A stretch of DNA of 63,721 nt, counting the filler, from Octopus bimaculoides (taxonomy: Eukaryota), in assembly GCF_001194135.2 (NCBI RefSeq). It is 9 parts of 9 records of this genome, joined end to end, with 100 filler letters (N's around TTAATTAATTAA, not from the genome) between each part and the next. Parts side by side here need not be neighbours in the genome. Positions count along the whole stretch, not along the records: positions 9,395 to 24,133 come from NC_068986.1; 8 more parts are not named here. One strand, written 5' to 3'. Each line of letters opens with the position of its first letter. Position 1 is the first letter of the stretch. Position numbers and translations under genes: made by a program. Shown here one piece after another: positions 15,401 to 21,319 of this stretch. The notes beneath the pieces are model-generated. The model did not search any database, had not been told where the DNA came from, and saw only the letters and a list, made by a program, of their open reading frames with translations.

Positions 15401-15734
15401 ATGGTAGCCTTAATTCACAAATAAAAAAAATCATATCCCCCAATCTGGTGTTGAGCACACATTTTCATCGTTGCATATTTGTGTATATGTATGCAGACAC
15501 AGTAATGTAATTATGTACACACACGTGCACATACGCGGAAGCGTACACACACACACACACTCACACACACACGCACGCACACTCGCACGCACACACACTC
15601 GCACGCACACACACTCGCACGCACACACAGAATATAAACACACGTCTGTACATGTGTTGTTCCTCATCTTCTGTGAATTAGAAATCACTTACCAGTTCCA
15701 TTTTTTCCTATTCAACCTGTACTTTCAGGTCAAT

Positions 15735-15807
15735 ATGACACGACTATTTCCTATTTGCTTGCTGTTTTTGATAGAAGTAATAGCTTTAATGGAAGCAGAT
15801 GAAGACG
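15735..15807 (+). CDS. Secreted cysteine-rich protein, coding exon 1 (signal peptide MTRLFPICLLFLIEVIALMEADED)
   Basis: A polypyrimidine tract and acceptor (TACTTTCAG, exon start 15729) precede the ATG at 15735. Hydrophobic signal-like peptide. Consensus phase-1 donor GACG|GTAAGT at 15808. Confidence 0.78.
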
Positions 15808-16520
15808 GTAAGTTTCCAATAAGATATATACCTACTGAATAATCATACATTCCAAAATTGCCTGAACACAAATTCATTCTTCCATTTAATCAATCAGTTG
15901 TTTCTGCTTTTAGTTGGTGTTACATTTAGCGATAATTGACTTCCGTTATCACAAATATGTATATATATATATATATATATATATATATATATGTGCGTGT
16001 GTGTGTGTGTGTGTGTGTGTGACACACAGGATTTGAAACTCGTATTCCTGACTCTGGTGTTTTAAGTAACCACGATCAGGTACCACAGTGGTGAGCCATA
16101 GCTATTGTTCTGTTGTCACATGCTCATTTCAAATAGAGAGGTTCAATTTTCATCCAGACAATTTATAAAATGTTTCTTGACTGTAACACAGTCATTAATT
16201 AATGCAGAACACCTCACGTGTGCATTACGTATGAAGAGAAAAAGAAGTAAAATGGACTGATGAGATCATTTTACCTATCTACTGACATGGTGTTACAACT
16301 TTTTGTACGGAGTGTGTAAATTTGCCTTTCGCCATTTTATTGATCGTAGCAATTATTTATAGCTAGCACATTTATGTTCATCTGGTTTCTTAGCCTGTAA
16401 CATTTAGTCTTCCACTCCATATCTCTGCCGCATTTCACTCCAGGCAATATTTTGTTGCATTTAAAAATGTCTCACAAATCGGACTATACGGTATATAATA
16501 CCAAATTCAACTTCTTCTTC

Positions 16521-16650
16521 TTATTATTATTATTATTAGTATTAGTATTAGTATTATTATTATTATTATTATTATTATTATTATTATTATTATTATTATT
16601 ATTATTATTATTATTATTATTATTATTATTATTAGTATTATTATTATTAT
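16521..16650. repeat. (ATT)n microsatellite
   Basis: Long near-perfect TTA run. Confidence 0.97.
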
Positions 16651-17456
16651 GTTGTTTTTTTTTCTTTCCTCAAATTTTCTTCCATTTCTCGCCGAGTGTT
16701 TTCCGTACACCTAAGGCAGAGGAGCTCATTGTATGCATTCCTAGTTTACACACGCAAATTCACAGGTAAAATATGTATTTAAAAAAAAATAATAAATATA
16801 TAAATTCATGAATGGATGTTGTTTTTACGGCGATAATGCTCAGTACATGAGTCGTTCCAGTTAACACGATTTTTTGCACTTCATGTAGAGATGGTAAGCC
16901 TACGTTTTGTGTTCAAATTCCGCTGAGGTCGATTTTGCCTTTCATCCTCTCGGGGTAGATAAACTAAGTTGCAGTGAAACACTGGGGTCGATGTAATCAA
17001 CTCGTCCCCCCACCCAAATTTTAGACCTTGTGCCAATAGGAGAAATTATTATTATTATTACTTTTATTTTCTTATTGTCAGCAAACAAACCTGTTCCAAA
17101 ACCTGAATATCGGTGTTTTTTTTTTTACTTTATGCGATTTACCAGTTCGTACCAAAACCTTTTGGCTTATCTAAACCACATCTGTGGGTAGGAGAAAACT
17201 TTATAGAGAAAGTATCGATTCATTAAATTTGTTTAATGGAAACAGAACTGGGAAAAGACATATATGATCCGACTGTATCCGACATATATGATACGACATA
17301 TATGAATTAGAAGGAAGCAAAAGATATGATCTAAGTTGGATATTATCGGAACCATCTTTACCTTCTCCTAGTGATTATAATAAAACTACATGACGAAATA
17401 TCCGCTATATAATACAGCGTAGTAGATATATTTTTAATATATGTATTTTTATTTAG

Positions 17457-17594: not shown

Positions 17595-18330
17595 GTAAGT
17601 TGACAAACAAAATTTACATTTCCTCTCTTCGCTAGATGTTTTGAAATATCAAAACCCCAACGACGGTTTATATTTACATTCTTTTGAATGAGATGAGCCT
17701 TGTTCGGTGACTGTTACTTACTGTCTATCTACCAACGTTAACTGTGAGATTGATGTACCCCAACTCCCAGACAATTATATCAAACCGAGTAAACGGCGGA
17801 TCCTTAGTTTATTGAGCTTAAGTGACGAAATGTAATATCCAACACAGTAGAGTTTGATCTCAGTGCATAACGTAATGCATCAATGTACCGCAAAACATTT
17901 TTGCAGGCGCACTAACGATTTTGGTGGGCTGATAGAATCGTTAGCACGTCGAAGAAAATGCTTAGCCACATTTCTTCTGGACCTTTACAGTTTGAACTTA
18001 TATCCTGCTAAGTTCAACTTAATCTTTAATCCCATCCAGGTCGAAAATTAAGGTACCAGTTAAATTCCGGAGCCGCTGGTATTAACTGGCTGTCTATCCT
18101 CGAAAATTGCTGGCATTAAAGCCTCTAACTAATAGACCTCCTGTTCATGGTAATCTTGGTCGCTTAAACGTCATGGAAGCTGGATAAATGGTCTTAGGAA
18201 TCCTAGGGCTAAAGACAAATAAAATAACCTATTCTTATATTTCAATATCTAGCTTGAATTATACGTTATCTGGTCTGGTATATTTCTAAGAATGAGATTT
18301 ATGTCTGTATGCATTATCAACTGGCATCAA

Positions 18331-18570
18331 TACGAGGTCCGACTGTAAAGTTCATAGGCTTACCAATAATACAATCTCATGGAATACGACCAAATGAGGT
18401 TTATTTCTCAGCATAGTACGCCTTGCAGTCGACACACTTATTCATCGGTTTCGAAGTTCTTGGAGCTCATTTGTGAAGAAGCTTTGATCCTGTTGGTGAA
18501 AAATGTCAACAATGACATGACGTCATCGCTGAGATATTGGTTCCCAGCCAAGTTTGTTTTTTCATGTTAG
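18331..18570 (-). mobile_element. Mariner 3' end remnant (TIR plus transposase C-terminus), within intron 2 of the cysteine-rich gene
   Basis: TACGAGGTCCGACTGTAAAGTTC terminus. The minus strand reads NKCVDCKAYYAEK*, which resembles the mariner C-terminal KCV...G.Y.E motif. Confidence 0.6.
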
Positions 18571-19945
18571 AGAAGAGGTGATATATCATACATATAGTAG
18601 ACAGATGGGGAAAAATCGGGAGAATAGGGAGAGTGACCAACCGGTTCAAAGCCACATTGATGCCCAGCGTTTCTACTTGATGGCCTTTCGTAACTCCCTC
18701 AGTGAGACGTCTGGGGTACTCTCTATTAATGGCATGGCTCTTTTGAAGATATTAAATAAAATAATTGGTTTCTGGCTCCAAGTTGTTAAGCCAATACTAC
18801 TCTTGGACTAGGAAACGTTGAACGAAACTTGACACGCCTCAAACAATGTCAGATTTCCCCTGATAGTATGAACCTAGTGTGCTTTTCATAAGGTGTCAAA
18901 AGACGTGGCAGCTACCGAGGAGAAACCTCCATCATACCGTGTTGAATGAGCAGGATATATTGAAATCTCTTGTGGGATATGCTATTAGCATTAGCTATTT
19001 GATTTATAATCAATCGCCTGTCATCGATTAGCATGTGATAAACATGATCAATATTTTCGGCGGTGGTGGTATTTGCAGGACCTCCAAGCTTCAGGTTATA
19101 TTCAAGACTTAACTTTTCCTTCGTAAATTCAGCTGCTAACCTGGTGCCCAGTTGATTGATAAAGCTGAAGTGTCATTCTCTAATATAGCAATCATATCAG
19201 TATGAATGTCCAGGGGTGGGAGGACAAATCCTTTTTCCTGTCGGTAACTGATAGCACCACGATGCCAAATATTGTATATTTTCGAGAGAACTTGCAACTA
19301 ATTATTTCTGAAGTCTCCTTTGAACAGTGAGGTTGTTTACCTGAACAAAACACACACACACACACACACACACACACACACACACACACACACACACACA
19401 CACACTCTTCAGTTATTGATTTGAAGATCTGAAATTAATGCATGCAAGCTATTGCAGCTCTAGTATCCCTCTTTCATTGTCAGCCTATGAACTTTTCAAT
19501 CCATCCTCGTATGTGTCTAATCTCGAACACCGAACATTGTTTTACGTACCTGAATTTTCCTTTAACGATTCCGATTTTAAGATGAATATGAACTCAATAT
19601 AAAAAAGATGCCTAATGAATTACCTTTAATAAACATATAGACAAGAAAATCTCTAACAAAAAGAGTGAGCTGGCAAAATAGCAGACCAGGCAAATGGCTT
19701 ATCAGTATTTCTCGTGGACTCCGGATCTGAATTCAAACTTCACCGAGGTCAATTTTGCATTCGATCCATTCGAGATCGATGAAATAAGTAGCTGTCGTGC
19801 TTTAGAGTCCATATAATTGACTTTCCCGACTCTCTGAAATTGGTGGCCTATTGCTAAACTTATAAACCATTATAGGCATAATTGAAGGAAAGATAATTAT
19901 TTAATAGAACGATCCATATATTGTTTGTTTTCTTATCAAAAACAG

Positions 19946-20097
19946 ATTGTCGGAAGCCTGACGGGAATTGTGTTGGGAAAGGAAAAAAGTGGACATCTCT
20001 AGATGAAGGTGAATGCTGGACTCACGAATGCAGAATTTTCGGAATGAAACGCATTCGAATATTATCAATATCGGGGGGAAACTGTAATGAAACGTGA
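19946..20097 (+). CDS. Secreted cysteine-rich protein, exon 3: YCRKPDGNCVGKGKKWTSLDEGECWTHECRIFGMKRIRILSISGGNCNET*
   Basis: Acceptor TTTTCTTATCAAAAACAG|, in frame at phase 1, with the same Cys/Trp spacing as exon 2. Stop TGA at 20095-20097. Alternative donors at 20084 (giving a 138-nt exon) and 20094 (GTGAGT) leave the true 3' end uncertain. Confidence 0.75.
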
Positions 20098-21319
20098 GTA
20101 TATATTTTCAGGTATTGATTTGGCTTATAAATTTCCTCCACATCACTGTGGTATTGCCTTTGCAAGACACGTCCTCCTCAGTTCTGCCTCTCGCTCCAGT
20201 TCGATCTCATTCAGATGTACAAATATCAATGTAAGCATTTCCAGTTAAATGTTTCAACTGATAAACCGTTAGAATCCCGCTTCTTTTATTATTATTATTT
20301 AAAACGTGTCTGTTTCTTTTCCAAGGAAGACTCTGACAAACTAATTTCATTCTCATAAGTAGAGCAAAATTAAAATTGAAATTCTTTTTACATTTACTTG
20401 CTTAATATTTTAAAGGGCTGCGCCCACCTTGAGTTGTTTGAATGGACAAATCAACGCCAGTAGTGTACTTGCTTATTTTTAAATTATTCTCTTCTTCTAT
20501 CATTTGTCGGATCGCTAAGACTTAAATAAATTGTCAGGGGTTGACAAGTGTTGGGAGAGAGAGAGAAAGAGAGAGAGATAGATAGAGAGAGAGAGAGAGA
20601 GAAACAAGCACGCAGAAAACCACACAATATACAAGCACACAGACATACGCACTCACACACGCACATACACACATAGACTCACACACACACGCAGCGTCAG
20701 AACACAGAACCTGGCGCCAGTCCTGCTTCTCTTCAGTTTAAAGATTTGAGCAAAGTCGACTCCAGCATCGGGACCAGCTTTGTGCCAGTATGAAGGCACA
20801 CTGGCATAACGCTGTTCCTCTAAATGGAAACCTTACTTGTCATTCTGGTTTTGTAATATGAAGCAAAGTAGGCCTTGCCGTCCACTCAAGAAGACGCATA
20901 GTAAATGATCTACAACCACTGAAGCAAACTTAGTTCTCGTCTTCTTCCATTTCTCAAAAAGTTTGCAAGGCACAAGCAAGCTCCAAGAGACACATTTCGT
21001 GTTCATAGAACATGATTACCGCTTAAATTTACTTGACCCTCATTTGTCTTTCACGACGAGAAATGAACTAACACAATGTGACACCCAAAAGGACGGTATC
21101 TGAATGAACATGGTTACAAGGCGAGCTACGCTGACTGAGTCATTTCAAATAGTTTAAAAACTACATAAATTACAGAACAAAAGAACTGAAATATTATATG
21201 AAAATATTTTAGTATCTATATCAACACTGCATAGGCAAACAAGCAAATAGACGCTGAACCGCAAAAGAAACTCGATGTTTTCAAATGTCATTTTTATATG
21301 ATAAATTCTGAATATTTAT

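Follow-up and report, generated by a model that had tools for sequence, protein, structure and literature searches.

The stretch of DNA that has been analysed here, referred to as "the window" (63,721 nucleotides of the Octopus bimaculoides assembly GCF_001194135.2, composed of nine parts joined by filler letters), contains at positions 15729-20099 of its plus strand three consecutive exons of the gene LOC106872057, which encode a small cysteine- and tryptophan-rich protein of 120 amino acids (aa). With all the evidence taken together, the reading that we favour, and that we regard as reasonably probable, is that LOC106872057 belongs to a tandemly duplicated family of secreted proteins that is restricted to Octopus, and that its product is made of two modules similar to the fibronectin type I (FnI) module, which would serve in extracellular binding or recognition.

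The three exons are located in the part of the window that comes from NC_068986.1 (positions 9,395 to 24,133, referred to as "the piece"), which is 100% identical to the chromosome record CM046606.1 (assembly GCA_001194135.2) at ~106.85 Mb. The 120-aa product is 100% identical, over its full length, to isoform X2 of LOC106872057 (XP_052825013.1, one of the RefSeq isoforms X1-X3), which is labelled "uncharacterized", and the same sequence is present in UniProt within the 205-aa product A0A0L8IDL1; the original prediction, made from the DNA alone, had presented the gene as unassembled and undescribed, a claim that these entries contradict. The gene model had been available before, and the additions made here are the definition of the family, the corrected 3' end with a stop codon inside a splice donor, the call of an FnI-like fold and the signature of accelerated evolution. 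A full-text literature search with the identifiers (LOC, XP and UniProt) of 12 family entries has returned no mention of them, and a full-text search for "fibronectin type I" with "octopus" has found nothing.

Exon structure and the 3' end

When the exons at 15735-15807 (73 nucleotides, nt), 17457-17594 (138 nt) and 19946-20097 are joined, a single frame of 363 nt is obtained, which is translated to MTRLFPICLLFLIEVIALMEADEDDCDGCFLEGKCHKYDEDWLEKMDIICALKTCHRMSRVEWKIYAKSVYCRKPDGNCVGKGKKWTSLDEGECWTHECRIFGMKRIRILSISGGNCNET, followed by the stop codon. The exon 1/exon 2 and exon 2/exon 3 junctions are both in phase 1, and they are delimited by canonical donors (ACG/GTAAGT after exon 1 and GTGT/GTAAGT after exon 2, the slash marking the splice site) and canonical acceptors (TTTAG/ATTGCG before exon 2 and AACAG/ATTGTC before exon 3). 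The elements of the gene that are located in the window are the following:

15729..15807, plus strand: signal-peptide exon, with the acceptor TTTCAG/GTCAAT at 15728/15729 and a phase-1 end at ACG/GTAAGT
17457..17594, plus strand: module-1 exon of 138 nt, phase 1-1, coding for D25-V70 (DCDGCFLEGKCHKYDEDWLEKMDIICALKTCHRMSRVEWKIYAKSV) with C26, C29, C35, C50 and C55
19946..20093, plus strand: module-2 exon, 148 nt when spliced, coding for Y71-E119 and two bases of T120, with C72, C79, C94, C99 and C117
20094..20099, plus strand: exon-3 donor GTGAGT, holding the in-frame stop TGA at 20095-20097

The arrangement of three spliced exons in one frame of ~120 aa had already been proposed from the DNA alone; its canonical sites and phases have been reproduced here, and the same exons and phases occur in Octopus sinensis. 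The phase-1 junctions and the 138-nt length of exon 2, also part of that proposal, hold as well, and exon 2 is conserved across the family: of the mapped paralogs, two have an exon 2 of 138 nt, as O. sinensis does, and a third has one of 135 nt, the donor GTGT/GTAAGTTG being common to them. The same exon is skipped, in frame, in two older models (XP_014774402.1 and A0A0L8IDN6). The exon-3 acceptor ACAG/ATTGT is kept in all five mapped genes.

The start of the gene had been placed at 15729, which is correct as the position of an acceptor, but the exon that follows it is internal, and the 5' exons are situated farther upstream, outside the piece: as annotated, LOC106872057 extends over 47 kb, with alternative 5' exons, situated between 13 and 34 kb upstream of the piece, that join the acceptor at 15728/15729. 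The signal-peptide exon codes for MTRLFPICLLFLIEVIALMEADED and for the first base of the following codon. Each of the isoforms X1-X3 carries an N-terminal extension of its own, and none of the relatives has any of them; for this reason the ATG at 15735 is likely the true start of LOC106872057, with the upstream exons representing 5' untranslated region; every paralog, as well as the ortholog, begins with MT(R/Q)L. The piece has been searched for the tail exon that is described below, for the 5' exons and for further modules (on both strands for module copies), and none of them is located inside it.

The 3' end of the gene differs from the one that was originally proposed, where the TGA at 20095-20097 had been taken as the end of the gene: this stop codon is located within a conserved splice donor of strong context at 20094 (GAAAC/GTGAGTATATA), at which the annotated models splice. 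In these models, exon 3 is 148 nt long, closes in phase 2 at 20093 and is followed by a tail exon of 38 aa, located ~8.1 kb downstream of exon 3 and 4.1 kb past the end of the piece, which codes for the basic sequence TTTIPTKNRKQKKTRLPITEETEDNGSTGPIFYRSMKR; if splicing does not occur at 20094, the protein terminates with GGNCNET. A donor that carries an in-frame stop (G/TGAGT or G/TAAGT) is also found in the O. sinensis gene LOC118763691 and in LOC128248175, LOC128248056 and LOC128248060, the equivalent sites being located at 19903-19908 of the O. sinensis locus (L001) and, in the other extracted loci, at ~18631 (L003), 18323-18328 (L004) and 18511-18516 (L005). Among the family models with such a donor, some terminate at it and others continue to a short tail exon, and a similar tail is carried by LOC115212787 of O. 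sinensis. Because the stop is part of the donor itself, spliced and unspliced transcripts would both encode the two modules in full, the short tail being present in the one case and absent in the other. The alternative donor at 20084, by which exon 3 would also be 138 nt long, is arithmetically valid, as had been pointed out, but it is used by none of the annotated models of the five genes.

A gene family restricted to Octopus

The ortholog in O. sinensis, LOC118763691, is a protein of 119 aa with 60% identity to the O. bimaculoides product; its exons (73, 138 and 145-149 nt) have the same phases and splice motifs, as well as the same first-exon acceptor, and six colinear alignable intron blocks identify its locus as orthologous. 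When 1.84 billion representative proteins were scanned in full with HMMER, the search retrieved 11 family representatives, 10 of them at E<=1e-10, and no protein from any other taxon at E<=1e-3; according to a second search and a cluster look-up, all family representatives come from O. bimaculoides or O. sinensis. The restriction to this lineage, which had been suspected from the DNA, is supported by these searches. Apart from the two orthologous genes, the members that have been named are LOC128248056, LOC128248057, LOC128248060, LOC128248175 and LOC128248178; A0A0L8IDT5, A0A0L8IDP9 and A0A0L8IEY6; and LOC115212787 and LOC118763783. We are nearly certain that LOC106872057 is a real member of a secreted, Octopus-restricted family.

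Four of the O. bimaculoides genes (LOC106872057, LOC128248175, LOC128248056 and LOC128248060) are clustered on one chromosome at 106.82-107.27 Mb, i.e. within ~450 kb, in both orientations, and they follow a common exon plan. Module-like fragments are also located between the annotated genes. One is an open segment similar to module 1 (11720-11815 of locus L002, plus strand), 37% identical to LOC128248178 and close to the first exon of isoform X1; in addition, a module with internal stops is found beside a piece that resembles the tail exon, upstream of LOC128248175 (1916-2143 and 4953-5006 of locus L003, both on the plus strand). These fragments are probably unannotated or decayed paralogs of the array.

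Signal peptide, modules and cysteines

The N-terminus of the protein consists of a short polar n-region, followed by the h-region LFPICLLFLIEVIAL with a mean Kyte-Doolittle hydropathy of 2.8; these are typical of the signal peptide that had been predicted, which is probably cut after A17 or A21. The mature core has ~99 aa and 11.5 kDa, with a near-neutral charge (isoelectric point, pI, ~6.3). The gaps between its ten successive cysteines are 2, 5, 14, 4, 16, 6, 14, 4 and 17 residues. Modules 1 and 2 share the pattern G-x-C-x6-W-x7-C-x4-C in register, followed by 16-17 residues and a further cysteine, so that C35, C50, C55 and C72 of the first module correspond to C79, C94, C99 and C117 of the second. 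The columns C50, C55, C72, C79, W86, C94, C99 and C117 are invariant in the family; C26, C29 and C35 occur in every member whose N-terminus has been modelled, and W42 occurs in nearly all members.

The comparison of the family profiles of the two modules with hhalign has produced an in-register alignment of 38 gapless columns (P=0.0017), consistent with the two related cysteine/tryptophan modules, each mostly on its own phase-1 exon, that the original prediction described. The single-sequence comparison of module 1 with module 2 within O. bimaculoides is not significant (z=-0.2), and module 2 of O. sinensis is the only significant single-sequence partner in the module comparison. On the basis of the profile match and of the phase-1 exon starts that the modules share, they likely arose by internal duplication. 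The most parsimonious disulfide map, based on the repeated modules and on the strand prediction, is C26-C29, C35-C55, C50-C72, C79-C99 and C94-C117, where C72, judging from the strand register, probably closes module 1 by bonding C50.

Resemblance to the fibronectin type I module

The structure of the product has been modelled with AlphaFold2 from an alignment of 12 sequences. The model is all-beta, with a mean predicted local distance difference test score (pLDDT) of 85 (90-95 over residues 31-110) and a predicted template modelling score of 0.66; its strands are located at residues 28-31, 34-37, 41-45, 49-57 and 63-73 in module 1 (strands A-E) and at residues 85-90, 93-102 and 106-113 in module 2. 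The module of ~40-45 residues with a two-stranded and a three-stranded antiparallel sheet, as expected for FnI, is present in the predicted model. When the model is compared with the PDB by Foldseek, the top 19 matches are all fragments of fibronectin that consist of type I modules, with FnI pairs (1-2, 2-3, 4-5 and 8-9FnI) accounting for nearly all of them, and they include a 6FnI-FnII-7FnI fragment; the probability is 0.97-1.0 for the first 15 matches and at most 0.35 for those that rank below the FnI matches. The FnI-pair matches cover both modules, with 85-93 aligned columns and a target-normalised template modelling score (TM) of 0.38-0.56, and the E-values range from 5e-4 to 0.6. For the paralog LOC128248175, which is 35% identical, a second model (pLDDT 79.5) likewise has FnI pairs as its top 8 matches, with TM up to 0.61. 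On the strength of these two models, the fold is probably FnI-like.

The FnI module has four cysteines, bonded C1-C3 and C2-C4, a tyrosine in strand B and a tryptophan in strand C; in the vertebrate genes of fibronectin and of tPA, each FnI module is encoded by one exon of phase 1-1. The octopus protein, as modelled, resembles the FnI pairs (2-3FnI, 4-5FnI and 8-9FnI) and the tPA finger domain in being built of tandem all-beta modules of ~45 residues with a short linker, where the segment C72-x6-C79 is comparable to the 5-9 residues that separate FnI modules; each octopus module contains four invariant cysteines and a conserved tryptophan that, in a non-significant register, aligns with the FnI tryptophan, and the module-1 exon is of phase 1-1, as FnI exons are, although its boundary does not coincide with that of the module. 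Unlike FnI, the octopus protein has an additional N-terminal C-x2-C and a cysteine at the position of the FnI tyrosine, and unlike the proteins that host FnI modules, which are large mosaics, it is a stand-alone product of two modules and ~11 kDa.

Several observations weigh against an FnI-like assignment. The Pfam model fn1 (PF00039) matches none of 11 family members at E<=10; the hhalign comparison of the octopus modules with a profile of nine human FnI modules, which were rebuilt and verified against PDB chains, is not significant (P=0.04-0.12), and neither is that of the whole-family profile with the 2-3FnI pair (P=0.07). In the register of these non-significant alignments, the invariant tryptophan is placed on the FnI tryptophan, C29 and C72 on the first FnI cysteine, and C35 and C79 on the FnI tyrosine. 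The spacing of the cysteines is C-x14-C-x4-C-x16/17-C in the octopus modules, as opposed to C-x21-26-C-x-C-x8-10-C in FnI; the exon boundary is located one residue before C72, not in the linker between the modules, and exon 3 ends in phase 2. Lastly, the Foldseek E-values (5e-4 to 0.1) and TM-scores (0.45-0.61) are only moderate, both AlphaFold models have been built on one shallow 12-sequence alignment, and the disulfide pairing is one that we infer. By sequence, the octopus modules do not qualify as members of the FN1 family. More generally, a Pfam search at E<=10 with the 120-aa product and 10 relatives has returned nothing meaningful, and a search of the PDB sequences at E<=10, with the single protein as well as with the family profile, has returned 0 matches, in accordance with the original statement that no named sequence family could be assigned.

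The FN-I domain has been described as deuterostome-specific (PMC3002383; PMC5006582). Octopus, a protostome, lies outside this range, and the octopus modules are consequently either an undetected ancient relative of FnI or a convergent look-alike. Of the two, we lean slightly towards convergence. By convergence, we refer to an unrelated or de novo disulfide-rich mini-domain of Octopus that has reached the simple FnI-like topology of two plus three strands, an origin to which we assign an even chance, and which concerns ancestry only, being compatible with the functional reading. The non-significant sequence signal, the dissimilar cysteine spacing and the confinement of the family to Octopus, taken with the deuterostome-specific distribution of FN-I, are in favour of convergence; the extent of the structural match, which includes both modules and the length of the linker, the alignment of the invariant tryptophan with that of FnI and the phase of the module-1 exon speak against it. 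It appears unlikely, on the other hand, that the octopus modules are true relatives of FnI, with a fold that predates the protostome-deuterostome split and has been expanded into a fast-evolving family of free, two-module proteins for species-specific recognition; if this were true, their role could be that of a pheromone sensed on contact or of a gamete signal, in analogy with the squid beta-microseminoprotein, or that of a salivary or immune binder.

Comparison with other disulfide-rich families

Three folds had been suggested from the DNA alone, i.e. fibronectin type I, beta-microseminoprotein and von Willebrand factor C (VWC); the first has gained support from AlphaFold and Foldseek in two family members, while the other two are not supported by profile or by fold.

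Many protostome proteins contain VWC domains, the first subdomain of which is FnI-like, as seen in the VWC structures of collagen IIA and crossveinless-2. The octopus product could, on this ground, be a protein with a single or tandem VWC domain (VWC or single-domain VWC, SVWC, of the Vago-like type), in which case the FnI matches would reflect VWC ancestry; a weak Pfam match to VWC (PF00093) does occur in one paralog (E=1.9). This match is at noise level (9.3 bits, against a cut-off of 27.6 bits) and is shared by none of the other ten members, the C-x2-C-x-C motif of VWC is lacking, and VWC structures are missing from the top 50 Foldseek matches of both models, which leaves the VWC explanation improbable.

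Slightly less probable still is a divergent member of the beta-microseminoprotein family (MSMB/PSP94), similar to the Loligo beta-MSP egg-capsule pheromone. MSMB proteins have ~95 aa, 10 cysteines and two beta domains, as the octopus protein does; MSMB-like genes are present in cephalopods, and multi-copy genes are found in both families. The squid member acts as a contact pheromone, MSMB evolves rapidly, and its introns are more conserved than its exons (PMC3268785), the last being also the case in the octopus gene. The Pfam model PSP94 (PF05825) nevertheless has no match at E<=10 in 11 members, and the hhalign comparison of the family profile with human MSMB gives P=0.53. The MSMB fold, which consists of an N-terminal Greek key and a four-stranded C-terminal domain, has been considered as a candidate and rejected, as six MSMB chains of the PDB (3ix0, 2iz3, 1xhh, 2iz4, 6rwc and 6imf) are outside the Foldseek top 50 for both models. 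The cysteine pattern of MSMB (C-x15-C-x18-C-x2-C-x-C-x6-CC-x13-C-x8-C-x13-C) is unrelated and includes an adjacent pair, and MSMB, unlike the octopus protein, is without an internal repeat.

A growth factor of the pleiotrophin/midkine type is hardly credible: UniRef names the paralog A0A0L8IDT5 "Pleiotrophin/Midkine N-terminal domain-containing protein", and the 10 cysteines could be divided 6+4, as in the N and C domains of midkine, but Pfam PTN_MK has no match at E<=10 in A0A0L8IDT5 or in the other members, the family-profile search of all PDB sequences is empty at the same threshold, no such chain is among the top 50 Foldseek matches of either model, and the core, with its pI of ~6.3, is not strongly basic, in contrast to the heparin-binding composition that accompanies the TSR-like domains of pleiotrophin and midkine. 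The UniRef name looks like a stale automatic label.

Constraint and divergence

Between O. bimaculoides and O. sinensis, the nonsynonymous substitution rate relative to the synonymous one (dN/dS, by the Nei-Gojobori method) is 0.33, with a dS of 0.89 that is near saturation. The O. sinensis ortholog retains all 10 mature cysteines and all 4 tryptophans. When neutral drift is simulated at a divergence of 20-30%, an open frame with the 10 cysteines and the 4 tryptophans survives in <=5e-6 of the runs. On these results, the scaffold is under strong constraint.

At the nucleotide level, the exons are 70.3% identical to those of the ortholog (Jukes-Cantor, JC, distance 0.38), while the flanking non-coding DNA, over 1.8 kb that can be aligned, is 78.1% identical (JC 0.26); this comparison has used alignable intron blocks only, a restriction that favours the introns and tells against a reading of rapid exon change. 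From paralog to paralog, identity is 59-61% in the module exons, 64-68% in the 80-nt intron flanks and 71% in the signal-peptide exon. The combination of a conserved signal peptide and cysteine frame, a fast-changing surface and tandem copies is typical of secreted proteins at contested or species-specific interfaces, which suggests that the octopus family belongs among them.

The same data bear on whether the gene could have been annotated in error, or could be a pseudogene in decay within DNA rich in transposons. Its flanks are rich in transposon remnants and microsatellites, and its exons, as has just been described, are no better conserved than its introns. The frame, however, is open, the ortholog and four mapped relatives preserve the splice sites and phases, the cysteines and tryptophans are retained to an extent that neutral simulations almost never reproduce, dN/dS is 0.33, and the fold is confidently predicted by AlphaFold; an artefact or pseudogene is, in view of these results, extremely improbable.

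Surroundings of the gene

The introns and flanks of LOC106872057 in the window are repeat-rich DNA that is typical of octopus. A fragment of a Tc1/mariner-type transposase (15100-15414, minus strand; Pfam HTH_Tnp_Tc3_2, E=5.8e-12) is located ~320 bp upstream of the signal-peptide exon, and the adjoining open segment (14879-15139, minus strand) resembles the catalytic part of a transposase, with no Pfam match. Farther upstream, a fragment of a PIF1-like helicase (12520-12831, plus strand; Pfam PIF1, E=6.4e-12) is probably a remnant of a Helitron-type transposon within an upstream intron. An interspersed repeat of ~430 bp with an internal microsatellite is located at 22789-23223, with a partial copy at 13511-13626; the 30-kb O. 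sinensis locus L001 contains at least 5 copies of it (78-87% identical), which makes it an element that is abundant in both species. Intron 1 contains a repeat of ~100 bp (16901-17002), which has 7 matches of 77-86% identity in the same locus and is likely a short interspersed element or an element similar to miniature inverted-repeat transposable elements (MITE-like). The microsatellites of the introns and flanks are the following:

13649-13715: (TATG)17
15545-15629: 16-bp ACAC/GCAC array
16521-16650: (TTA)43
19350-19405: (AC)28

These microsatellites give rise to long, spurious cysteine- or leucine-rich open frames in six-frame translation. Rfam and tRNA scans of the piece have returned no matches.

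A possible role and its meaning

If the reading that we favour is followed, i.e. that of an Octopus-restricted, tandemly duplicated family with two FnI-like modules, the product would be secreted after the cleavage of its signal peptide and would then consist of two consecutive all-beta modules, which would be rigid and stapled by disulfides, the ten invariant cysteines serving as the scaffold. Pairs of FnI modules bind fibrin, collagen and bacterial adhesins, with the peptide of the partner being added as an extra strand along the edge of the module. It is because of the analogy with these pairs that the octopus protein may be pictured as a small extracellular binder, to which extended peptide segments of a partner would dock by beta-strand addition.

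The conserved scaffold, the fast-changing surface and the duplication in tandem suggest that the protein acts at a species-specific interface or at one engaged in an arms race; the co-evolving partner might be a prey, a pathogen, a gamete, or a conspecific signal or receptor. The original prediction had named a venom or saliva, skin, sucker or immune effector as candidate roles. We put forward a binding protein at a fast-evolving interface as a tentative proposal only, with the odds rather against it. A similar combination of features is known from the conotoxin superfamilies, which are fast-evolving, disulfide-rich secreted proteins whose signal peptide is conserved while the mature region varies. 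The octopus family is comparable to them in that its signal exon is better conserved among paralogs than its mature exons (71% vs 59-61%), in its invariant cysteine framework and in its tandem duplication; it differs from them in the larger size of the product, in its two predicted beta modules and in the modest contrast between its conserved and variable parts.

This analysis adds a specific structural interpretation of an orphan Octopus family, the members of which constitute a candidate set for work on cephalopod venom and saliva, mucosal immunity and chemical communication. For matrix biology, the octopus family offers a case on which ideas about how the FnI module originated can be tested. 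If the FnI-like fold is confirmed, the module would occur outside the deuterostomes, in an unusual stand-alone format of two modules.

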